Below, one piece after another: positions 1-17,871 of a DNA stretch of 38,850 nt (positions are counted from its first letter, which is position 1; each line of letters opens with the position of its first letter). Origin of the DNA: Macrostomum lignano (lineage: Eukaryota); NCBI GenBank assembly GCA_002269645.1, contig NIVC01004663.1, forward strand, positions 1 through 38,850. Reading direction: 5' to 3'. The position numbers and the translations under genes were made by a program. The notes beneath the pieces are model-generated. The model made no database searches, was not told the DNA's origin, and worked only from the letters and a program-made list of their open reading frames with translations.

Positions 1-1659
1 AGGAGCTGCGCCACCAAGTCACCACGTGCAAAGTCACTCAGACTAGTGACGCCGATGTTGCGCCGATTAGCTTCGAGCTTAGGGCAGGTCCAGAAATGAA
101 ATTGGTCCGGAACATCCAGGCAAGGTCGCAGGGGCCGCCTTCGGTGATGCCGGTGCGGTTGCGATAATAGTTGGAGTCAGGGCAGTGGCCTGCTCTGACC
201 TGCGCCACGAGGATTTGTTGGCGACGCGGTCCCTGATGGAAGGAGATCGTTTTACCATAGACCTCGGCCAAGTGCCCATGAAGGGTAGGGCGGTACTTGA
301 GATGATGGCGGATGCGCTCTTTAGCAGCTGCAAGGGTAATTTCTGACTCGTCTTGAGACAGTGTGGCCGCGAGCTTGGCCTCTGCGTCGACCAGTTCGTT
401 ACCGGGCCACCCGAATGTCCCGGAACCCATTGCAGGGTAATCTTTGTGTGCATGGCTGCGTTAGCGAGGAGATCTTTAACTTGCTCAAGCCGCAGGTTGA
501 GGGTTGGACGGTCAGTTTTGATGGCGGCGATGGCGCTCAGGCTGTCGTCAGTTTGACGGCATGGCGCGGTTCGGAGCTGATAATGTCTTCCAGGGCGAGC
601 TTGATGGCCATTAATTCGGCTTCGTAGGAGTTGCACCAGCGACCAGCTGCTGCGTGCCGCGGCGACGGCTGGTGCCATCATGATTGAGGAAGATCCAAGC
701 GGCTCCGCCGTTTTCGACCCCTCCGGTGGCCGAGCCATCGGTGTAGTAGGTGCAGGATCCTGGGCAGCGTTGCTCAATGGCTGCAAGAGTTTGTTCAGTC
801 GAAGTGGCTCCCAGGTCTGGCAGGTCGGTGAAACAGTTGATGCCCTGGTCGACGAGTGAGGTCCAGGGTGGACGGCGAGCAAGGTGGAAGGGCATACGCG
901 GGAGCGGCATCATGGAATCGCAGATGCGCCTCGCTTGTTCGCGCAGGCCTCTGTTGGCCGCGAGTCGGACGTTCGAGTGTTTTTCACAGATCTGGCGAAA
1001 CGGGTCACTGAGAGGGCGACGGATGGCTTTCTCGTAGGTGAGCAGAGCACGCCTGCGGGCCTCAACGCTGATAGGGTCAACCTGAGCCTCCAGGTAAATA
1101 GCTTCCGTGGGGGGTCGATCGTGGCAGGCCGGTGATGGTGCGCAGCGCCTCCCTTTGAGCGCGGTCAAGTTCATCCAGGCGAGTCTTGGACAACCAGGGC
1201 GTCCAGGCCGATGCAGCATGCCAGATCACCGACTCGACCAAAGCACGGTAGACTTTGAGGAGGAGGAGGCGATCCCATCCCCAATCCTGGTTTGCTAAAG
1301 CTTTGATGATGGCAGTTCGACGGAGCATTTTGTCCTTGATTTCGCTCAGATGTTTGTCGAAAAGAAGTCCGCGGTCAATCCAGACCCCGAGGAACTTCAG
1401 CGCCGGCTTACTGGGGATAGGACGCCCAAGCAACGAGAGATGAACGGTGGTGTCTCGATCGGCTCGGTTGCGAGAGAACAGGCAGTATTTAGTTTTTGAA
1501 GGGTTGAGTTCGATGCGAAGATTATTGGCCCACTCTTCGATAAGGTGGAGGGCCCTTTGAATGCGCTCACGGACATCTGTGATATTCCTGCCGGAGGCCC
1601 AGATGGCGAGGTCGTCCGCGTATCCACTGTAATCGACCTCTTGGACGATGTAGTCAGTA
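1..1659 (-). mobile_element. Non-LTR retrotransposon (LINE A), I-group (Ingi/Nimb-like), 5'-truncated or interrupted; RT C-terminal half + RNase H + C-terminal CCHC knuckle
   Basis: Minus-strand frames join into YADDLAIW (~1620-1597), KFLGVWID, WGWD...YRALVES, RNase H YYTDGS...YEAELMAI...TDSLSA...LQWVPGH..PGNELVD and CDL-CLDVPDQFHFWTC. At least 5 single-base frameshifts separate the track ORFs 1077..1433, 611..1219, 79..882 and 38..430. Confidence 0.92.
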
Positions 1660-1767
1660 CCCTCTGGGCTTTACGCCTAGACTGCGGGTATCCCGCAGCT
1701 CCTACTCGGCGCCGCGTTTTCGTCGCGGAGGGGACCCTCTTCCTTCGGGGGAGGTCGAAGAGCGCCG
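1660..1767 (+). ncRNA. HDV/CPEB3-like self-cleaving ribozyme fold (copy 1), probably the 5' leader of a non-LTR element
   Basis: P1 CCCUCU(1660-65)/GGAGGG(1727-32). J1/2 holds hairpins GGGC/GCCU and CUGCGGG/CCCGCAG. P2 CGGCGC-C(1707-13)/G[A]GCGCCG(1760-67). P3 GCG/CGC around L3 UUUUCGU(1717-23). P4 is capped by C(UUCG)G. J4/2 is CGAA with the putative catalytic C at 1756. Confidence 0.75.
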
Positions 1768-1800
1768 TAAATCGGACACCATGTCCCACGTGCAACTGTT

Positions 1801-2053
1801 GCTGCTGCTGTTGTTGTTGTTGTTGTTGTTGTTGACTGCGGACCGAGCTCGGAATAACCGGACCAGGTACCAAACCCCTACCGCTGACAGAGCCAGCGAC
1901 AAAGGCTGAGCACAGAGGGCCGGACCGAGCCACATCCACCGCCCCTGAGCCAGGAGCGGTGACCGATTCCCGGCGCTCTTCGCCGCCCGAAGAACGGGCG
2001 TTGCCTCCCCCCCGCGACAAAGACGCGGCGCCGGATAGGGCCTGCTGATTACC
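1801..2053 (-). mobile_element. Short (~250 bp) non-autonomous retroelement: ribozyme head, ~140 bp body, (CAA)8(CAG)3 tail
   Basis: Ribozyme-like core at 2034-1970. Microsatellite tail at 1834-1801 has the same composition as the LINE B tail. No RT coding between them. Confidence 0.55.
1970..2034 (-). ncRNA. HDV-like ribozyme core (copy 2; P1 5' strand missing)
   Basis: Minus strand reads CCGGCGCC-GCG-UCUUUGU-CGC-GGGGGGG-AG-GCAA-CGCCCG-UUCUU-CGGGCG-G-CGAA-G[A]GCGCCGG. This is the same P2/P3/L3/P4/J4-2 order as copy 1 and includes the genomic-HDV-like GCAA...GCGAA frame. Confidence 0.7.
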
Positions 2054-2189
2054 CTGCTGCTGTTGTTGTTGTTGTTGTTGTTGCCGGATCAAGCTGTGCC
2101 TATGCCATTCCTCTTCCACCACTTCCAGAAGGCGTGCGCCGCCTTCTCCTCCGTCCACCAGTCACCAAGAGTCTGGATGCCCAACTCCT
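2054..2189 (-). mobile_element. LINE B 3' terminus (ORF end + (CAA)n(CAG)3 tail), separated from its body by the copia insertion
   Basis: The frame from 6853 continues across the CTCCT TSD: QCPATFWKRQE|LGIQTLGDWWTEEKAAHAFWKWWKRNGIGTA*. Stop at 2091-2089; CAA tail at 2083-2062. Confidence 0.85.
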
Positions 2190-2447
2190 TATTAAGAAAG
2201 CCTTGTTAAGTTATAATGAATCGGCGTTTATTGAGTTTTGAGAAAGATAGCAAAAGAAGGGTTAACATGGAATTTAGCACTGGCGTAGCTCAAACAAAAC
2301 TTAGTGGTACAGGTAAGGGAGTCGAAAACCATAGATATAATTAAGCAGTCTGTTATAGAAAATTCTAGAAGGAAAACTTGGATTCACTTACTATAAATAT
2401 AAAGTTGACTATTTTAAGATAAACGATTACTTATAACATCTTTAACA
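2190..2447 (-). repeat. Copia 3' LTR (258 bp; TGTTAA...TTAATA)
   Basis: Direct repeat of 6595-6852; only difference seen is G/A at 2210 vs 6615. Confidence 0.97.
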
Positions 2448-2456
2448 CTCCCACTT
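2448..2456 (-). other. Polypurine tract (AAGTGGGAG)
   Basis: Purine-rich run immediately 5' of the 3' LTR on the minus strand. Confidence 0.85.
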
Positions 2457-2545
2457 AATGTTTAGCTTAAAACTAGTGCATACTGGTACAAACAGTTCAT
2501 ATTGTGTCTTGAATATCAAAGTTAGATAAAGAGTTAGCAGTCATA

Positions 2546-2812
2546 TTAACGAACAGGAATCAGTTCCTTGAGCACTTGAAACTTGGCATTAGACAGTGCT
2601 TTAGTAAGAATGTCAGCGATCATCTCCTCTGACGGACAGTAAATTAGCTTTAAAGTTCCACCGACCAACTTCTCACGCACGAAATGGTGACGGATATCAA
2701 TGTGCTTAGAACGACTGTGGAAGACAGGATTCCTAGCTAGAGCAATACAGCCTTGATTGTCTTCTAGGATAGTAACGTATTTGAGACTTTCTACGCGAAG
2801 ATCTAGTAGTAA
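2546..2812 (-). CDS. Copia RNase H C-terminal part (frameshifted from pol)
   Basis: EDNQGCIALARNPVFHSRSKHIDIRHHFVRE...MIADILTKAL motifs; frameshift near 2813 (WLQ-CA-QLLLDL). Confidence 0.93.
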   Translation of the reverse strand, partial: LLLDLRVESLKYVTILEDNQGCIALARNPVFHSRSKHIDIRHHFVREKLVGGTLKLIYCPSEEMIADILTKALSNAKFQVLKELIPVR

Positions 2813-5718
2813 CTGTGTTGTAACCATGTGGCTTCTTGGGTAGCAGCTGAGAGTGCCATGTACTCGGCCTCCGTCGTCGATAGGGCTACAGTTTGTTGCT
2901 TCTTGCTACTCCAGCTAATCGGACATTCAGCCAACTTGAATATGTATCCGGTTGTAGAACGTCGGTCATTGTGATCTCCAGCCCAGTCTGCATCGGAATA
3001 TCCAATTAGATCGATTGCACGCGAGTCCTTCTGAAAAACCAATCCTGATGAAATGGTTCCCTTTAGATATCTCAGGACACGCTTCACGCCACTCCAATGC
3101 TGTTCAGTTGGGTCTGAGCAATATCGCGCGAGAACTCCCACTGCAGATGACACATCTGGTCGTGTAGCTAGTGCTGCGTAGTTTAGACTTCCTATTGCCG
3201 CCTGATACATAGTCTTGTCCACCTTAGCATCACAGGTCTGTGTAGTGTAGAACTTGACACTTGTGTCCATTGGTGTTGATACCGGTTTGCAGTCCATCAT
3301 GTTGAATTTAGAAAGGATGGTATTTAGATACCGCTCTTGGTTTAGAAACAATGAACCATTCTTCCAGGTAGCTTGAATTCCAAGAAAATAGTGAAATTCG
3401 CCTAGATCCTTCATCTTAAATTTAGATTGCAGTTCTTGCTTCAGTACGGGCATGTAGTCGTCAGATGCTGTTAATAGAATGTCGTCCACATACACACCGA
3501 TCGCAGATTGAGAGTTAGCATAGATACACGGTTCTGACTTTGCCTGCACTAGGTTAAGACTTAAAAGTTCATCATGTAGAGTTTGATTCCAACATCTAGG
3601 AGCCTGCTTGAGTCCATATAGACTTCTTTCTAGTTTGCATACTAGTGTTTCCTTGCCTTGAACCACAAATCCTTCCGGTTGTTCCATGTAAATTTCTTCG
3701 TCTAGTTTGCCGTTTAAAAATGCTGTTACGACATCCATCTGGTGAATTTTCCAATCTCGTTGAACTCCAACAGTCAGTAGAGTTCTAATTGATGTAAATC
3801 GAGCTACTGGTGCATACGTCTCCTCATAATCTACTCCATGCTCTTGAGAGTATCCTTTGACTACCAATCTTGCTTTGTATCTGTCTACTGAGTTGTCTGC
3901 CTTATACTTGACACGAAATACCCACTTACAGCCAATAGTTTGACGTCCTTTTGGTAGCTCAACCAGTTTCCATGTCTTGTTCTCCATCAGTGACTCGTAC
4001 TCTGCGTTCGCAGCCTCTTGCCAGTCTTTAGAGAATGAGCTGTCTAATGCTTGCTGTAGAGTTTTCGGTTCGTCAATTTGTGTTGCGACGGATGCCACGT
4101 ACCTGTCAACGGGCTTCTTCTCTCGAGTTGATCTCCGAACTTCTTGCTTGTCGACAGTTTCAGGAACACATTTGAAATCAGACGATGCTGGTTCGGTACC
4201 TGCATTCAGTTGAAGTGTCTCCTGCTTCTCCACTAATTGCTTCACGAAGCACGACTCTTGGAACGTTACATCGCGACTGACGAAAACTGATCGTGTTTGG
4301 AAATCAAAACAACGATATCCTTTTGAGGTTTCCGAGTATCCAATAAATCTGACTTCCCGAGCTTTTGAGTCAAACTTGTGACGTTTCTCAGCTGGGACAT
4401 GCGCGTAGGCAACGCATCCAAATATTCGCAAATGCTGAACACTCGGCTTGCTGCCGGTCCAAATTTGATATGGTGTCGCTTTGTTGACTGCACTCGTTAT
4501 TGATCGATTACGCAGATATGCTGCCGTAGAGATTGCTTCTGCCCAGAATTCCTTGCCAATATGAGCATGTGCAATCATTGTTCGTGCTGCCTCCACCAAG
4601 GTTCGGTTCATTCTCTCGGCTACTCCGTTCTGTTTAGGAGAGTGTGGGACAGTAGTCTGGTGAATGATTCCGTTTCGGGCACAGAATGCCTCAAATTCTC
4701 CCGATGTATACTCTCCACCATTGTCAGTCCGAAGAATCTTGATAGACTTGCCTGTTTGATTCGTGACGAGAGCCTGAAAGATCTTGAATTTTTCTAAGAC
4801 TTCTGACTTGCTTTTAATGAAGTAAACTGAGCAATAGCGCGAATAGTCGTCAATAAATGTGACAAAATACTTTGATCCTCCAATTGACGTAGTTTTCATG
4901 GGACCGCACACGTCACTGTGAATTAGACCCAATAGTTCAGTTGACCTTGACGCTTCACCCTTTGCAAATGGCGTTCGATGTAGCTTTCCTTCCACACATG
5001 CTGTGCAGAAACTGATGCCTTCAGTTTTTACGTCATCCTTGCTAAGCTCAATTCCGTCCACTTGCTTTCCATTAATTAGAGATTTCAGGTCTTGCTCACC
5101 TAGGTGTCCATAGCGCTGATGCCATAGGTCGATGCTGTTGTTTCTCGCGACAGATGCAGTCTCGTTAGTTAGGTTAAAGCCTTTCAATTTGTACAGTCTG
5201 CCAACTTTTAAAGCTTCTCCAACAATCTTACCAGTTGCGCTCAAAATCTGACACTTGTCGTCGCTGAATTGTACACGGAAGCCTTTTCTTGTAACTGCTG
5301 ATACTGAGAACAAATTCTGTTCCATAAGTGGTACATATAGAACGTCGCTCAGCTCGCACAATTTCTTACCAGAACCAGTATTGATATACAACCGAACGGT
5401 TCCCTTTCCAGTGGCTTCGAGCTTATGTCCATCTGCTAGCGAAATGTTCTCCAGTACCGAAAAATCTTCAAATTCCTCAAAACTTGTCCGATCATTAGTC
5501 ATATGATTCGTTGCGCCTGAGTCCACAATCCATGTACTAGACTCGTTAGCTGTCGATGATGTGCCCATAGACAACGCCGGAAATGCAGAATCTTCCTCAT
5601 CTGAAGCTGAAAAGTCCTTTAAGTCTTTTGCTGGGGCGTCTGCAATCCTCGCCTGATGCCTTCTGTTGGATTTCTTCAAATCCTGTGGTCTTGAATTTGT
5701 GTTCGATCCACCTGTCAC
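2803..5718 (-). CDS. pol: Copia pol: aspartic protease, GAG-pre-integrase, integrase, reverse transcriptase, start of RNase H
   Basis: WIVDSGATNHM (PR); LWHQRYGH...CTAC and HSDVCGP...FIDDYSR...RTDNGGEY...QNGVAERMNRTL (IN); YKARLVVKGY, QMDVVTAFLNG, SLYGLKQAPR, VYVDDIL (RT); YSDADWAG (RH). Confidence 0.98.
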   Translation of the reverse strand: MTGGSNTNSRPQDLKKSNRRHQARIADAPAKDLKDFSASDEEDSAFPALSMGTSSTANESSTWIVDSGATNHMTNDRTSFEEFEDFSVLENISLADGHKLEATGKGTVRLYINTGSGKKLCELSDVLYVPLMEQNLFSVSAVTRKGFRVQFSDDKCQILSATGKIVGEALKVGRLYKLKGFNLTNETASVARNNSIDLWHQRYGHLGEQDLKSLINGKQVDGIELSKDDVKTEGISFCTACVEGKLHRTPFAKGEASRSTELLGLIHSDVCGPMKTTSIGGSKYFVTFIDDYSRYCSVYFIKSKSEVLEKFKIFQALVTNQTGKSIKILRTDNGGEYTSGEFEAFCARNGIIHQTTVPHSPKQNGVAERMNRTLVEAARTMIAHAHIGKEFWAEAISTAAYLRNRSITSAVNKATPYQIWTGSKPSVQHLRIFGCVAYAHVPAEKRHKFDSKAREVRFIGYSETSKGYRCFDFQTRSVFVSRDVTFQESCFVKQLVEKQETLQLNAGTEPASSDFKCVPETVDKQEVRRSTREKKPVDRYVASVATQIDEPKTLQQALDSSFSKDWQEAANAEYESLMENKTWKLVELPKGRQTIGCKWVFRVKYKADNSVDRYKARLVVKGYSQEHGVDYEETYAPVARFTSIRTLLTVGVQRDWKIHQMDVVTAFLNGKLDEEIYMEQPEGFVVQGKETLVCKLERSLYGLKQAPRCWNQTLHDELLSLNLVQAKSEPCIYANSQSAIGVYVDDILLTASDDYMPVLKQELQSKFKMKDLGEFHYFLGIQATWKNGSLFLNQERYLNTILSKFNMMDCKPVSTPMDTSVKFYTTQTCDAKVDKTMYQAAIGSLNYAALATRPDVSSAVGVLARYCSDPTEQHWSGVKRVLRYLKGTISSGLVFQKDSRAIDLIGYSDADWAGDHNDRRSTTGYIFKLAECPISWSSKKQQTVALSTTEAEYMALSAATQEATWLQHSYY

Positions 5719-5753
5719 TGAGAGGCTATTCTTGAATTTGTAACAGTGCTTCT

Positions 5754-6440
5754 TTAGTGACCAGGCTTATTGCAGAAAAAACATACTTTTGGTCTGACAC
5801 TCTGGTGCTGTTGCCTCTTGAATCCAACCAGAGCCTTTGAATTGCTGCTAGGTTCACAGCTTTCCTGTTCAAGTCGTTTTGACTCCTTGTGCAAAAGCCG
5901 CTCGAGTACGAAATTCATCGTCAAGTCGTCCGCTCGCGATTCCAGGGCAGTAATCAACCCGTCATATGACTTCGGCAAACTGTTTAGCAGAATCGTGACT
6001 TGATAGTCCTCGGGAACACCTGCCCCGATAGCCGACAGTCGTTTGACGATATCCTTGAACTGATTAACATGCTCCTGCATGGATGCACCTTCCACCATCT
6101 TGAGCGCTTGTAGTTTCCGATTAAGAAACAATTTATTTGCCAGTGAACTCCGCTCGAAATATGCTTGAAGCTTATCCCACGCTTCCTTCGGAGTTTCTGC
6201 ATCCTCAATTAGATGAATTTGACTATCCGCAACAGCCAATACGATAGTCGCTAGGGCTTTGTTCGCACGCCGCTTGAACTGAACTTTGACCTCGTTGGTC
6301 GCGTCCTCAGCAAGTGTCTCTGTACCATCAACAACTTCCCAAAGTTCTCGCTCCATCAGGACGTTCTTCATCTTGAACTTCCAGACAGTGTAGTTGGAAC
6401 TATCCAACTTCTCAACCAGTAGTTTGGCATCGAAAGACAT
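5754..6440 (-). CDS. gag: Copia gag (UBN2-type capsid + CCHC knuckle split by a 1-nt deletion)
   Basis: ATG at 6440: MSFDAKLLVEKLDSSNYTVWKFKMKNVL...LWEVVDG...LLNSLPKSYD. CFFCNKPGH continues as KKHC in the shifted frame (CX2CX4HX4C). Confidence 0.93.
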   Translation of the reverse strand: MSFDAKLLVEKLDSSNYTVWKFKMKNVLMERELWEVVDGTETLAEDATNEVKVQFKRRANKALATIVLAVADSQIHLIEDAETPKEAWDKLQAYFERSSLANKLFLNRKLQALKMVEGASMQEHVNQFKDIVKRLSAIGAGVPEDYQVTILLNSLPKSYDGLITALESRADDLTMNFVLERLLHKESKRLEQESCEPSSNSKALVGFKRQQHQSVRPKVCFFCNKPGH

Positions 6441-6567
6441 CGTGTCGATCCACCAGCACAACTGGACTGCTGAGCTTGAACTTTCTAAGAGACGGTAGAG
6501 CCTGACAATCACGCCGACTGACGCACTGCCACTGAAGCAGCTTTATTGTTCACACTGCAGTAGATCA

Positions 6568-6594
6568 CAGTGGAAGGGCGCAGGGCCCATAACC
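6568..6594 (-). other. Primer binding site complementary to the 5' half of initiator tRNA-Met
   Basis: GGTTATGGGCCCTG directly follows the 5' LTR. It resembles the Drosophila copia half-tRNAiMet PBS (GGTTATGGGCCCAG). Confidence 0.9.
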
Positions 6595-6852
6595 TATTAA
6601 GAAAGCCTTGTTAAATTATAATGAATCGGCGTTTATTGAGTTTTGAGAAAGATAGCAAAAGAAGGGTTAACATGGAATTTAGCACTGGCGTAGCTCAAAC
6701 AAAACTTAGTGGTACAGGTAAGGGAGTCGAAAACCATAGATATAATTAAGCAGTCTGTTATAGAAAATTCTAGAAGGAAAACTTGGATTCACTTACTATA
6801 AATATAAAGTTGACTATTTTAAGATAAACGATTACTTATAACATCTTTAACA
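6595..6852 (-). repeat. Copia 5' LTR (258 bp)
   Basis: Direct repeat of 2190-2447, adjacent to the PBS. Confidence 0.97.
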
Positions 6853-7440
6853 CTCCTGTCTTTTCCAGAAGGTGGCTGGGCACTGACATGCTCGATGCTT
6901 TCCTCCTCAAGCCCGCATTTTCTGCAGATGCCGTCCGTTTCTTTTCCAAGTCTTTTCCTGTAGCTCGCCAGTTCGAGCGAGTGGCCAGTTCTAGCTCTCC
7001 TGAAGCTGGTGGCGTCTCCTGTGCTTTCAAAGGTCGTCTTCTTAATGGTTGCTCGGTTGCCGCTGTAGGTCTTTTCACAGCGCGGGTGCGCCCCTCCAGC
7101 TTTTTTAGCTTTCTCAGCTTCTGCCGCCTCGATCGCCTGTCACACAGCGCTCTTGCCCACCGTCGCCTCTTGCTGGTCCTCCTCGCAGGCTGTCGCAGCC
7201 ACTTTGTCTGCCTCCTCGTTTCCCGGGAGCCCGCAGTGCGCTGGGATCCAGGCAAGCTCGACAATCTTTCCCCTCTCCTTCAACTCTTCCAGCTTCCATC
7301 TGATCTCTCCTGCGTGTTGGTGTTTGCTGTTTCCGAATATTACCTTCAGGGCGCTCGCGCTGTCTGTGAGGATAGCTGCCTTCTGCCAACTTCTTTCCTG
7401 CCTGCAGAGCCAGCTACAGGCCTCTTCCAGCTTTGGCTGC
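6853..7440 (-). mobile_element. LINE B body: RNase H C-terminal half and CCHC region, frameshifted, 5'-truncated
   Basis: AILTDSASAL...VELAWIPAHCGLPGNEEADKVA (RNase H). In another frame: RTGHSLELASYRKRLGKETDGICRKCGLEEESIEHV..CPA. Confidence 0.88.
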
Positions 7441-7579
7441 AGGCTAACACCTCGCGTGACGCAGGGTTGCGCGAGCCAGTGTGACCACACCGGCCGGTCC
7501 GAGCCCAGGACCGACAGTGGGGACCGTGGGGTGCCGAAGATCTGCGTAACGAGGCCCTCCACGGCCACCACCGTCTAAT

Positions 7580-8740
7580 GTTCAAGAACTCAAATTTCTT
7601 CAAGTGAACCTGCAGTCCGTGTTTGTAGGCGGTCCAAAACCTGTTCCAAATGCGAGTAGTGGTCTTTCCGAGTCCTCAAGAATATCAGGGTATCATCGAT
7701 GTAAGATATGATGAATGACAGTCCGTAAAAAACAGTCAATGAAGCGTTGAAATTTTGTGCTGCATTCCTCAGGCCGAAGGGCATGTGTGTACTCGAACAA
7801 TCCAAACGGTGTGGTGATAGCGGTTTTGCATATATCTTCTTCTGCGACTGGAATCTGATGAAGGGCGCGAACAAGGTCTAACTTTGAAAACACAGTGCTT
7901 CCGTGTAGGTACCGAGTGAAGGTATGAATATGTGGAACCGGATAGTTGTCCGAATTTGTTCGTTTGTTCAGTTCGCGATAGACACCGCATGGACGCCAGC
8001 CAGCTCCCTTGGGTGCCATGTAGAGGGGTGACGCCCAAGCGCTTGAGAATGGTCTGAGGTAGCCGGCATCAATTAACTGCTGAAACTCCTACTTTGCAGC
8101 CTGCAGTTTTGCAGGGTGCAGTTGCCAAGGTCGCAAGTGAACCGGTTCTCCACTACCAGTGTCTAGCCGGTGAACAGTCTCATGCTTGACCTCTGAATCT
8201 GGCGGAAGGGCTCCGCTTTCAACGAAAAAAAAACAATCTGCAAAATTTGTCAACAGCGTGCTCGTCCGAGAATCTAGGTTGGGTGGCAGTTCTACCGACT
8301 CAGTGAGTGGGCCACAATGAACATATGAAATTGACAAGGTAACAGTTGACAGTCCCGTTTCTGAGTCTCGAATGTGTTTGCGCTGGTAATCGACAACTAA
8401 CCCATGGTAAGCCAAGAAGTCGTAACCAATGATGGGTTTTACTACTGAAGGTCCACTGGAAGGTGCGATGCAAACCGGGGATTGAGAACATCCAGTAGGA
8501 CCGACCCGTGAATTTGTATGGCGGCTCCGGTAGCAGTAACTAAACGAATGTTTGCATAACAAGTGCGTTAACGAGGTGAGGTGGAACAATGGAAACCGAT
8601 CAGGCTCCGGTATCCACAATAAACTTGTAGGTATGTTTGATTTTAACATCCAACTCCAAACAGGTGGTCGACGGTGTTTCGGCACTGCGCACCGCGACCT
8701 CGAAAATCAACCAATTAGAGATAAGATGGAGGGAGATTTA
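7580..8740 (-). mobile_element. Degenerate Ty3/gypsy pol fragment (protease + RT N-terminal two thirds)
   Basis: FIVDTGA* at ~8620-8600; PIIGYDFL; SAWASPLHMAPK; [11 protein letters not shown]; [28 protein letters not shown]; [10 protein letters not shown]; SYIDD. Contains stops and frameshifts; no LTR seen. Confidence 0.92.
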
Positions 8741-10830: not shown

Positions 10831-12656
10831 GATTGAATTAGAGTTTCGGACTACTAACAGTATTATTGAATGATTTTTGCCTCGATAACAGCACTGCTGA
10901 ACAAAATGAGCAAAAGTGTGCGCCTAATCCAGCTACTGAAATAGGGGACAGGTAAGGAATCACCCAATCAAGCAAGTCTACGTAGCCTCTCAGCCAACCA
11001 ATCAGAAACTCAACAGCCGGAGACCAGGTAATCCACAGTGACCGAATCGGCTTAGTGCTTCGCAGCTGTAGGCCCGGGATGATGCTGATGTCACAATCTT
11101 CGCAGATAGCTAGCAGGTGATGTTCTTAATCTTGATGTTCGCTGCTGACGACCGGGGGATTCTTCCTTGATGATGATGGGGGGAGTCGCGATCCGGGGAT
11201 CAAGAGACGACGGTTGAGCTCCGGGAGGTCTAAGTTAGGCCAAAGTCCCAGGAGGCGGAGCAGGAGGGGGTGCAGGAGGTAGAGTCCGAGCGGGCCAAAA
11301 ACACCGGTTTAAATAGCCGCCAAGTGGACCGCAATTTGTTATAATGGAACACCTCGATGCTGATTGGCTGAGCCGATTTGTTATAACGCACGTCGAATTT
11401 TCTGATTGGCTGAGCTTGTTGTCACCCAAACTCACGTGACCAGAAGATCCTATCAGTTCCCTCGGGGCCATAAAAATACGACAGGTACGGTCATAAATCA
11501 CTAAAAATCGCTACATAATCATTTATGACCTTTTGCGTAGGAATGACTAAAATTATTGAAAAAATATACATTAGAAAGCTCTTATTAAGTAGAAAGTGAA
11601 TTAAGAAAAATCGCTAATCGCTAATCCCAACGTACTTTTAGGGGTAAAACGCATAGCTGTCAAAGCTGTCACACGCTTGGGTGAACACGAACAATAGGCC
11701 CTGACCTCATAAATCTTGATGACCTGTCAAAATGATGAGAAAAAAAGCTACCACCCGTATCCTCTCAGACTATCTGGCGCCAGTCTCAGCATTGAGTGAG
11801 GCGCAGGTGGCTGTCAGACCAGCTCGTTAGTAGGCTAGTAAGTTTGTAGCCAATGTGCGAGCGTGAAGTTTGGAAAAAAGTGCGTCCTCATCATTAACAA
11901 CCAAATAATTAGCAAAAACACATAAATAGATGCTCGGCCTCCTGTGTCCTTACCAATACAGTTTGTTAGAGCAAGTTAACGTTTAAGTCTGAGACCTAAC
12001 TATTCTCAATAATTCAGAGTTTCGATATCACTCGGACTCATGTCGAGTATTCGTAACTAGATATCTCACTAACTAACTATTCAAGGCCCGTGGTTGGACC
12101 AGGGTAACCACCAGCCAAATCTGTGGCAAAACCAAAAGGCCAGGGTAAAAGGGCGCGAAAATTCAAATTGGTGCGCGCGGTATTTTTACCCCGAAAGTTC
12201 AGTGCATTAAAACAAATAATTGTCACAACGTCGCGTAATTCCGGTACATTAATAATCGGCGCTTGTGCATGAATTTCAGTGAATAAACTTCCATGTATTA
12301 GTAATCCTATTTCTCAGTAGTAATTTTGCATAACTACGCATTATCCAAGGAGCCCTATCATACTTAGAAATACCGCTAGATGGGGGCGATATACGCTCGT
12401 ACACAGCTGCAAATATCACGCACACAGGCCCGCTACTCTTAGCATTTGTTGTAAAACCAGGGCGGAAAGCCAGGGGCCCCACGGATCAGCCCAAGTAGGG
12501 CTCTGCCGCTGGATCTGTCTGTGGGCCATACTACCAGGGGCATATAGCCCGAGAGGCCACGCTTGGGACCTGCAAAAACATTGGGACTACTAGCTCAAGC
12601 CTATGGACTAAGACACCGCCAACAACCAGAGTGTGAGCGCGAAAAATTTTGGAAAA

Positions 12657-15689: not shown

Positions 15690-15986
15690 GATTTTGAAGA
15701 ATATCAGTTTCATGGAAAAGATGAAAAGTGAAATGAAAGGGAATAGAAGAAAGAGAAAAGGAAAGATGAAAGGAGACAAAAAGGAAAAGAAATATAATAT
15801 TAAAGGAAAGGGAACATGAGAAGAAAGAATTAAATTAAGAGATTAAATAGAAGAAAAGAGAGTAAGGCTAGAGAAAAGATAAGGGAGTTGAGAGGAAAGA
15901 AAAAAGGGGGAGCAGAAAGGTAAGATGAGGTAAAAAAGGAAAGGGTAAAGAGAATATATTGAGTAAGAGATATAAAAAATGATAGC

Positions 15987-16061
<75 letters not shown>

Positions 16062-16735
16062 CAGGATAGATGAGAGACAATAGATAAAAGAGTAGAGATG
16101 AGAAAAGAGAGATGAGAGACAAGAAAGGAAAGAAAAAGACAAGAGAAGAGAGAGGAGAAAAGTGAAAAGAGAAAATGGGAGAAATGAGATAGGAGAAAAG
16201 AGAAGGCAGATAAGAGAGCGGAGAGAGAAGAAAAATAGGAGAGAAGACGTGAGGGAATAGAGCCAAAAGATAAGAGAAAAGAGATAAGTGAGTAGAAATG
16301 AGAAATAAGAAAGAAAAATATAGAACAGGAGAGAAAGATGAGAAGAGAAATAAGAAAGCAGAGGAGAGATAAAGGAGAAAGTGGAGAAGAGGGAAAGATG
16401 AGATAGGAGAGAAGAAAAAGGGATAACAGAGGAGAGAGGAAAAGAGAGAGTAGAGCCAAAAGACAAAAAAGAAGAGAAGTGAGTATAGATAAGGGGAGAG
16501 AGAGGAGAAATAAGAGATGAAAGAGGAGAGAAGAAAAGGTAAAGAGGAAAAAGTAGTAAGGAGAAAGAAGAGAATAGATATAAGAGTACAGAGAGGATAG
16601 ATTAGAGATCAGAGAGTAGAGATAAGAGATAAGATAAAAAATGATAAGAGGGTAAAAATTGATAGAGGAGATGAGAGCAGAGAAGAGAGACTAGAGATAA
16701 GAGAGCAAAGAAGAGACAGGTAAGAGTCAGTCTAG
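15690..16735. repeat. ~1-kb purine-rich low-complexity tract with a pure (AG)~32 core at ~15995-16058
   Basis: Almost only A/G on the + strand. Confidence 0.95.
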
Positions 16736-17871
16736 ATGATGGCAATCAATTTTTGCAAATAGAAAACAAGATATGGTATTTGAGGTGTTATATTTAGAAT
16801 ATTTGGAAAGCATTTAGAAGATGAGATTTAGGTTATGGGATTCAGCTGATGGATTTCACAATGAAATTCTGGCAATGGGAGTTCTATTCCCTTATTCTAC
16901 TATTGGAGGAGTTGGCTTGTCATTATGTATAAATGTAAATTTTCCTAAACTAGGCCTATATTTCAATCATTTTTGTTTGTAAATGGAAACTAAATATATT
17001 TTAATTACAAACATTAGCATTATATAAAATATTTGCTAATAAGGCAAAGAAACATTTATCATTCAATGAATATCATACATATGCAACCCCTCTAGTTTAC
17101 ACTAAGTATGCAGCTTACTTTTTGACAAAAAATGCGAATCATCTGCAAAAGAAACCCTAATGCAAAAATTAACACAATTTGGATAAATGGCATGAGTAAT
17201 ATGATTGTCTTATTAGGGCTAAATGCCTAATCATCTAATTAGTACTATATCTATATTATTATTTTGTGGGTCATTTTTGCAACTTACCCCTGGTCTACCA
17301 TAATTTACCCTGGCCAGATTGGCCAGGTGGGCTAGCAGTTGCACATGTATAATAAATATTAACTTTCACTTGGTTTTCACTTGGTAAATAGTTTGTGGGT
17401 CATCATTTATTCTTAATTTTATTTTTAAGAATCTTTTCAATTGTTTCATGAAACAAAAACTAAGCTTGGTTGTTTTAATTATTTTTTGTTTTATTGTTCA
17501 CTTCTATCATTAAACATATATATCAAATTAAATTAATTCTACCAGTAATAATATTATATGAATTAGGATGAAATTAGTTTATGGAATTATTAAAGGCAAT
17601 TAAATTATTTGAATACTTGAAAATCTTTAAGATTTTAAAATATTTTTCATTGTTTTTCTATTAAATGTTATTTATCTTTAATACTTTTTGTTTTGATGGC
17701 TACAGCTATAGTAAATCTAAATTATGAGAGGACAGACTCCAAAGTGTTGATAAAATTTGGGTAATGTAGGTAAGATACTAATAGTGAAAAAAAATTCTGA
17801 TCATTATAAAATGTGTAACTAATATTTAGGATATGTTCTCTATTAAACTTATCCCTATTATGCAATCAAAT

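Follow-up and report, generated by a model that had tools for sequence, protein, structure and literature searches.

A truncated short retroelement of the flatworm Macrostomum lignano, headed by a putative HDV-like ribozyme

Mini elements in which a ribozyme is joined to a 3′ end are known as R2 SIDEs (Eickbush & Eickbush 2012, PMC3414825). In Drosophila these, and the R2/R1 hybrid SIDEs, are short and ORF-less, consist of a 5′ HDV-like ribozyme of LINE type and a structured 3′ end suited to a LINE reverse transcriptase, and spread by target-primed reverse transcription (TPRT) with variable 5′ junctions and truncations, the R1-type hybrids also having target-site duplications (TSDs) (PMC3414825). 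The mini-element considered here, from a flatworm, resembles them in these respects, its ribozyme being a putative one. There are nevertheless differences. SIDEs occupy the R2/R1 sites of 28S rDNA, and the R2 or R1 element with which they have a 3′ UTR in common has been identified; the flatworm element is found at CAA/CAG microsatellite-like sites, ends in (CAA)n, and has a 3′ module with no significant match in the LINE that was compared, LINE B. Neither of its two copies is at the R2/R1 site of 28S rDNA, both being instead at CAACAGCAGCAGCA. The trypanosomatid NARTc, RIME and SIDER are likewise non-autonomous and have at their first nucleotides the HDV-like ribozyme of an autonomous LINE (PMC3185411, PMC4035085). 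In them the head (Pr77 of L1Tc/ingi) doubles as an internal promoter and the tails are of poly(A) type, in contrast to the (CAA)n here; kinship in sequence between Pr77 and the flatworm head is not to be expected. The relationship to that group is one of analogy, membership being excluded because the host is a flatworm and the element is identical to sequence in its assembly, GCA_002269645.1.

At the level of the ribozyme itself there are two further points of comparison. For R2 ribozymes, large J1/2 loops and decayed internal copies of P1 have been described, and in the model of Eickbush et al. 2013 the 5′ end is extended with cleavage staying at the upstream P1 (PMC3774820). Just as in the R2 ribozymes with a large J1/2, the 5′ strand of P1 in the mini-element lies far from P2, beside which there is a substituted internal P1-like tract; the upstream P1 of R2 is often within 28S rRNA (PMC3774820), whereas that of the mini-element is formed by the end of the element itself, in an extension with two conserved hairpins. 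The Rfam family RF02682 (HDV-F-prausnitzii) has the same fold order, with AGGCAAC after P1 and G-C-[G/U]-A-A-G-A before the 3′ strand of P2, but the distal P1 (beyond what that model represents), the eukaryotic host and the retroelement context set the mini-element apart from it. By analogy, then, the mini-element would work as R2 SIDEs and NARTc/RIME/SIDER do, with a ribozyme head and a 3′ module that are mobilised in trans, while being a member of neither, and with its cleavage putative. It adds a new case to a kind of parasitic DNA that is already known. Beyond the rDNA-specific R2 SIDEs and the trypanosomatid NARTc/RIME/SIDER, we know of few non-autonomous retrotransposons that comprise only a self-cleaving ribozyme head and a 3′ module for recognition. 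In a literature search of incomplete coverage no paper was found that links Macrostomum with ribozymes, or HDV-like ribozymes with flatworms.

The stretch of DNA analysed, 38,850 nucleotides in all, is here termed the window. Close to its left end the segment running from 2053 to 1811 on the minus strand is a discrete short retroelement of M. lignano and, as judged from its sequence, a dead, 5′-shortened copy of a non-coding retrotransposon of about 250 bases. On the minus strand the order at that end of the window is an LTR-element pol fragment, an element termed LINE B, (CAG)3, the mini-element, (CAA)8, (CAG)3, an inverted ribozyme head termed copy 1 (whose reverse complement runs from 1795 to 1660), and a further element, LINE A. 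The ribozyme core of the mini-element is termed copy 2, and the second genomic locus with which it was aligned is L001. The features of the segment and its immediate flank are as follows.

2063 to 2189 (minus strand): 3′ end of LINE B (2084 to 2189) and its (CAA)7 tail (2083 to 2063)
2054 to 2062 (minus strand): 5′ copy of the TSD, (CAG)3, right after the (CAA)7 tail of LINE B
2041 to 2053 (minus strand): truncated 5′ end of the mini-element, from alignment with the full-length copy in L001
2033 to 2040 (minus strand): pyrimidine tract CCCUAUCC, a mismatch-bearing internal pseudo-P1, taken as P1 in the Rfam alignment
2027 to 2032 (minus strand): 5′ strand of P2, GGCGCC
2014 to 2026 (minus strand): P3 (GCG/CGC), an invariant helix, around L3 (UCUUUGU), whose first U and whose G at position 6 are kept
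2007 to 2013 (minus strand): 3′ strand of P1, a run of seven Gs
2001 to 2006 (minus strand): J1/4, AGGCAA by direct reading, fitting the Rfam consensus AGGCAAC
1984 to 2000 (minus strand): P4 hairpin, CGCCCG-UUCUU-CGGGCG
1972 to 1983 (minus strand): J4/2, GCGAA, and then the 3′ strand of P2, G-A-GCGCC, aligned to GCUAAGA of RF02682
1835 to 1971 (minus strand): non-coding body, identical in L001 and ending in GCAGU
1811 to 1834 (minus strand): (CAA)8 tail
1802 to 1810 (minus strand): 3′ copy of the TSD, (CAG)3

Of the two hairpins in J1/2, the second alone has left a remnant at 2041 to 2053, its loop and 3′ strand; relative to the full element this copy is without nucleotides 1 to 27 or 28, in which lie the 5′ strands of P1 and of hairpin 2 and the whole of hairpin 1. 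The putative catalytic C would be 1982, in J4/2, with 1977 the bulged A of the P2 3′ strand, and the first two bases of J1/4 (A,G) could form P1.1 with C,U of L3. A 30-bp exact repeat (2054 to 2083 is the same as 1802 to 1831) places a (CAA)n(CAG)3 string at both flanks.

A reading made earlier from the sequence alone, referred to below as the sequence-only reading, had the P1 5′ strand lost at the insertion of LINE B. The strand is indeed missing, but through truncation of the 5′ end as the mini-element integrated; the mini-element was not cut by LINE B, since the 5′ end of LINE B itself abuts the RT of an LTR element at about 7575. LINE B is itself 5′-truncated, encodes an RNase H domain, and is in two parts (7575 to 6853 and 2189 to 2084) divided by a copia-type LTR element.

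Several other features of the neighbourhood deserve recording. The copia-type LTR retrotransposon (2190 to 6852, minus strand) is young and is inserted in the C-terminal region of LINE B; its LTRs, at about 2190 to 2451 and 6596 to 6852, are identical at 260 of 261 positions, it is flanked by the TSD CTCCT (2185 to 2189 and 6853 to 6857), and its gag and pol ORFs have the Pfam copia-gag, integrase and RVT_2 domains. The LTR-retrotransposon pol fragment at 7580 to 8700 (minus strand), with RVT_1 and a YIDD motif, is broken at about 7575 to 7580 by LINE B. Far to the right, at 17870 to 38580, some 20 kb is taken up by adjoining minisatellite arrays, at least 15 different ones. Their units are of 16 to 45 bp, with a single one of 142 bp, the copy number reaches 60, and in most of the arrays one strand is strongly C-rich; ahead of them is an AG-rich low-complexity tract at about 15700 to 16700.

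Is the segment mobile, and where are its relatives? The segment and copy 1 were translated in six frames and joined as one protein query, which gave a single protein match, the M. lignano product BOX15_Mlig000306g3 (P0013), which has the exact translation of the segment within it and runs of glutamine on both sides; the DNA copy was reached through this protein match. It is at 10849 to 11095 in contig NIVC01002246.1 of GCA_002269645.1 (L001) and is identical to the window copy at 220 of 220 nucleotides (window 2054 to 1835), which suggests recent activity. The sample is thus two mini-element copies plus one paralogous head. With just two copies known, and these 100% identical, it might be supposed that there is no mobile mini-element at all, and that the segment is a 5′ fragment of a longer LINE or the product of segmental duplication or assembly redundancy, the more so as the M. 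lignano genome is highly duplicated. However, the identity ends exactly at the element ends and the flanks of the two loci are unrelated; the copies differ in 5′ extent, L001 having 27 to 28 extra 5′ bases (CCCCCTGGGATTTACTCCCAGCCTGCT), and in tail, (CAA)3–4 there against (CAA)8 in the window, so that the tail is of variable length; a 14-bp direct repeat, CAACAGCAGCAGCA, stands on either side of the L001 copy, at 10835 to 10848 and 11105 to 11118; and the type of tail is that of LINE B. An explanation without a mobile element is accordingly exceedingly improbable.

The marks of TPRT are present, namely a TSD, a 3′ repeat tail of variable length and, in one copy, 5′ truncation. Given these, and the L001 TSD in particular, the two (CAG)3 stretches that flank the window copy come from duplication of the target and are not tail. 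This bears on the sequence-only reading, which had a (CAA)8(CAG)3 tail: the (CAA)8 part, beginning 137 nt after P2, stands, and the (CAG)3 part belongs to the TSD. That reading also had the segment as a ribozyme-headed mini-element, and the L001 copy, TSD-flanked at an unrelated locus of the same species and with a C/U-rich P1 5′ strand and a CAA tail, bears it out. The pre-insertion site in L001 would have been a single CAACAGCAGCAGCAG; the search for a paralog of P0013 free of the insertion, i.e., an empty site, returned P0013 alone.

One insertion is beside a LINE tail (window) and the other is within predicted coding sequence (L001), and the same 14-mer is at both sites (window 1800 to 1813, L001 10835 to 10848), a hint of target-site specificity or of annealing of the tail to the target on CAA/CAG microsatellites. 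As an observation in its own right, the BOX15_Mlig000306g3 model reads through mini-element, tail and TSD, which lie in a region of glutamine repeats, in the sense direction and without a shift of frame; they amount to 270 nt (90 codons), and so part of that annotated protein is retroelement sequence. Since both insertions share the 14-mer, their sequences are identical and the one in L001 adds exactly 90 codons, one could envisage an active family of mini-retrotransposons which targets CAA/CAG (polyglutamine-type) microsatellites, lands sense and in frame in transcribed genes and cuts the host transcript, its expression coming from host read-through transcription plus self-cleavage. This is a tentative proposal, and a rather doubtful one.

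A separate matter is an open frame of 253 codons at 1397 to 2158 (minus strand) which spans the LINE B tail, the whole mini-element and the inverted head, and whose frame is that read in the L001 gene model. As a candidate for a 253-amino acid product it was set aside, being most likely a chance frame in GC-rich, CAA-repeat sequence.

The mini-element head was compared with copy 1, a putative ribozyme that is paralogous and complete, whose parts are listed here.

1660 to 1766 (plus strand): copy 1 as a whole
1660 to 1665 (plus strand): 5′ strand of P1, CCCUCU
1666 to 1678 and 1682 to 1698 (plus strand): the two hairpins
1708 to 1713 (plus strand): 5′ strand of P2
1714 to 1726 (plus strand): P3 and L3
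1727 to 1732 (plus strand): 3′ strand of P1
1736 to 1754 (plus strand): P4
1755 to 1766 (plus strand): UCGAA and the 3′ strand of P2

Positions 1958 to 2054 match 1780 to 1686 in inverse orientation with 73% identity over 100 bp (E=1.4e-10), so that the inverted paralog pointed out in the sequence-only reading is real; over the mini-element head the two are about 75% identical (95 of 127 aligned columns). As that reading also held, both cores have the same P2 (GGCGCC pairing with G-A-GCGCC, with its bulged A), the same P3 (GCG/CGC), the U....G. of L3 and CGAA, while P4 is replaced in sequence and yet fully paired, CGCCCG/CGGGCG in copy 2 and CCUCUUCC/GGGGGAGG in copy 1. The GCAA...GCGAA frame which it reported is present in copy 2. 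The active-site signatures are GCGAA or UCGAA in J4/2 and UCUUUGU or UUUUCGU in L3. P1.1, between C,U of L3 and A,G after the G-run as had been proposed, is of unambiguous register only in the mini-element and is ambiguous in copy 1. The order of a double pseudoknot, P1 5′, P2 5′, P3/L3, P1 3′, (P1.1), P4, J4/2, P2 3′, with all helices paired, is found in the L001 copy and in copy 1; copy 2 in the window falls short of the full HDV-like set by the missing P1 5′ strand. Despite the sequence difference of the two families, P1, P2, P3, P4 and both hairpins of J1/2 are fully paired in each, evidence of covariation that comes from two distinct sequences, there being just two mini-element copies and one paralogous head.

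Where does P1 lie? The mini-element in L001 has CCCCCU at nucleotide 1, and copy 1 has CCCUCU; these terminal hexamers pair perfectly with the six bases after P3, GGGGGG and GGAGGG respectively, a compensatory change of C-G to U-A between the families. Within about 68 nt upstream of P2 the terminal hexamer is the sole one that is fully complementary, at 10849 in L001 and at 1660 in copy 1, and in the same interval copy 2 of the window has one-mismatch candidates only and no fully complementary hexamer. The extra 5′ bases of L001 are homologous to 27 bases ahead of the previously recognised homology in copy 1, and the homology of copy 1 starts at 1660, exactly at its junction (1659/1660) with the RT of LINE A. 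With the TSD junction in L001 and the copy 1/LINE A junction at an equivalent nucleotide, two independent integrations begin at the same nucleotide. Between P1 and P2 there is a J1/2 of 43 nt which, despite sequence change, forms two hairpins in both families: GGGA/UCCC in the mini-element against GGGC/GCCU in copy 1 for the first, where there is a compensatory A-U/C-G change, and CCUGCUG/CAGCAGG against CUGCGGG/CCCGCAG for the second. The sequence-only reading expected intact copies to have a C/U-rich strand of 7 nt. The C/U-richness was right, and the length was not, the strand being a terminal hexamer that does not adjoin P2 but reaches across the structured J1/2 to form 6 bp. The usual P1 of HDV-like ribozymes has 7 bp.

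Alternatively the ribozyme might be real with its P1 formed by the proximal tract immediately before P2 (CCUAUCC, or CUCCUAC in copy 1), in which case the cut would be about 41 nt inside the element and the window copy would be complete. The Rfam alignment does pair CCUAUCC with GGGGGGG, the minimum free energy (MFE) fold of copy 1 pairs CUCCUAC with GGAGGGG and ties up some of the P1 5′ strand in a lengthened hairpin 1, and the tract is conserved in position and pyrimidine-rich in both families. Against this, the proximal pairing has an A.G mismatch in both families where the terminal hexamer is perfect, and mismatches in P1 tend to abolish or strongly reduce HDV-like cleavage (PMC3774820). 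Moreover, a proximal cut would strip a 41-nt leader from each new copy, yet this leader is present, and begins at the same nucleotide, in the L001 copy, a recent insertion, and in the head of LINE A. The proximal P1 is consequently very unlikely to be the functional one. A perfect terminal P1 together with a decayed internal P1 fits the R2 model, and on that footing the predicted cleavage site is put at nucleotide 1 of the element. The window copy, lacking the P1 5′ strand, should not self-cleave at the normal, terminal, site and is regarded as catalytically dead there.

How far is an HDV-like fold to be trusted in DNA of this composition? RF02682 matches 2039 to 1969 with 29.5 bits (E=0.002 in an 801-bp search) against a gathering score of 44; at gathering thresholds there is no Rfam match anywhere in the whole window, and copy 1 matches no HDV family in Rfam at E<=10. 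A generic HDV descriptor was also used. It asks for a 3-bp P3 with U....G in L3, a 3′ strand of P1 that adjoins P3, a hairpin for P4, C-N-R-A, and a P2 that pairs back to the six bases preceding P3. In 120 kb, both strands counted, its matches are confined to three sites (copy 1, copy 2 and the copy in L001), and 2000 dinucleotide shuffles of 1 to 2200 gave 27 core matches (0.0135 per shuffle), 4 of them with P1, a test whose independence is overstated since the descriptor was composed after the sequence was seen. The HDV-fold pattern is clearly not a product of chance. A metagenome scan with the P2-P3-P1 core pattern gave no matches; with a pattern of J4/2, P2 and downstream sequence it gave three, from one GC-rich, bacterial-looking locus and without an HDV-type Rfam match, and these were dismissed as chance.

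Even so, the head could be non-catalytic, a GC-rich structured 5′ UTR or promoter module of a LINE family and of its short derivative, with the HDV likeness fortuitous or vestigial; the 5′ end common to both would then mark the start of transcription. The sub-threshold Rfam match and the absence of copy 1 from the Rfam HDV families are in keeping with this, as is the ease with which GC-rich sequence forms helices, the MFE z-scores of the whole heads being only −1.1 to −1.9. It is nonetheless unlikely, for the complete set of HDV features is there in the right order, including GGCAA, P4, CGAA and P2; the descriptor finds nothing else and rarely matches shuffles; helices are kept through compensatory or wholesale change of sequence; and the predicted cleavage site is the terminus of the element.

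The mini-element ribozyme is, then, homologous to a head that is attached in inverted orientation to an RT/RNase H element, and the nature of that attachment needs comment. LINE A (1 to 1659, minus strand) has RT from just before YADD, and RNase H, with several frameshifts, and runs to the window edge; its best protein match is an M. lignano reverse transcriptase with 70% identity. It is joined head-on, in mid-RT, to inverted copy 1 at 1659/1660. Copy 1 is a 5′-terminal fragment in the opposite orientation to LINE A and without a tail of its own; it runs into CTGTTGCTGCTGCTG(TTG)n, with an ATG at 1781 downstream of it followed by CTG/TTG repeats. It probably is the ribozyme head of the LINE A family, captured by a 5′ inversion through twin priming. 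A free target end of (CAA)n type would have annealed to the UUG/CUG-rich stretch just past the start codon at 1781, and from there would have primed cDNA to the very 5′ end of the ribozyme-processed LINE A RNA. A nested insertion, with copy 1 as a separate element on the plus strand, was considered and rejected, because the DNA between the mini-element and LINE B contains nothing further of such an element or of LINE A; inversion by twin priming is the better fit.

What follows the head? Without its (CAA)n tail the full unit measures 247 nt, the ribozyme at nucleotides 1 to 110 being followed by 137 nt in which there is no ORF of note. This body has a 10-bp hairpin (1961 to 1937) and then a long imperfect hairpin of some 100 nt (about 1936 to 1840) just ahead of the tail, and its MFE of −74.6 kcal/mol (z=−4.09) was equalled by none of 200 shuffles. 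Between 1500 and 2300 ARAGORN finds no tRNA, and Rfam at E<=10 has no tRNA, 5S or 7SL match; lacking a head of any of these kinds it is not a canonical Pol III SINE, in agreement with the sequence-only reading. If stringent LINE/SINE pairs and R2 SIDEs (PMC3414825) are a guide, the 3′ hairpin and (CAA)n tail are likely a recognition module for a LINE reverse transcriptase.

Which LINE might that be? Mobilisation by the neighbouring LINEs had been proposed, and in that respect the sequence-only reading found no support. The comparison covered the 3′ end of LINE B, that of LINE A being outside the window. Local alignment of the LINE B 3′ region with the mini-element body gave no significant similarity, 182 of 500 shuffles scoring as high, and an 11-mer, AGCTYGRTCCG, near the tails of both has p of about 0.08. 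The (CAA)n tail repeat is common to the two. LINE B as a demonstrated partner was rejected, its 3′ alignment being no better than those of shuffles. Taken as a whole, what had been observed in the sequence-only reading is confirmed and its interpretation is in part supported.

The explanation that we consider probable is that the segment is a single 5′-truncated insertion of a non-autonomous non-LTR retrotransposon with an HDV-like head and terminal P1, copy 1 being the head of the LINE A family. The life cycle proposed for it is as follows. Having no promoter of its own, the element would be transcribed within a longer RNA, from the host or from a neighbour, and the ribozyme would cut immediately 5′ of nucleotide 1, thereby fixing where the RNA begins. 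A LINE whose own tails are (CAA)n would supply the reverse transcriptase; this enzyme would recognise the 3′ hairpin and tail, and by TPRT would copy the RNA into CAA/CAG-rich target DNA with generation of a TSD. In the case of the window copy, which integrated beside the LINE B tail, copying would have stopped 27 to 28 nt short of the 5′ end.

The architecture, a terminal P1, a structured J1/2 of 43 nt and a decayed internal P1, matches the R2 5′-extension model. M. lignano is a model flatworm in which transgenesis is possible. The mini-element provides a compact natural substrate for three issues: how ribozyme processing defines the 5′ ends of retrotransposons, how a 3′ hairpin and a microsatellite tail recruit a LINE reverse transcriptase, and whether the choice of CAA/CAG targets is driven by the enzyme or by annealing. 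There is also a consequence for annotation, as at least one predicted protein of M. lignano has 90 codons that really come from the mini-element.
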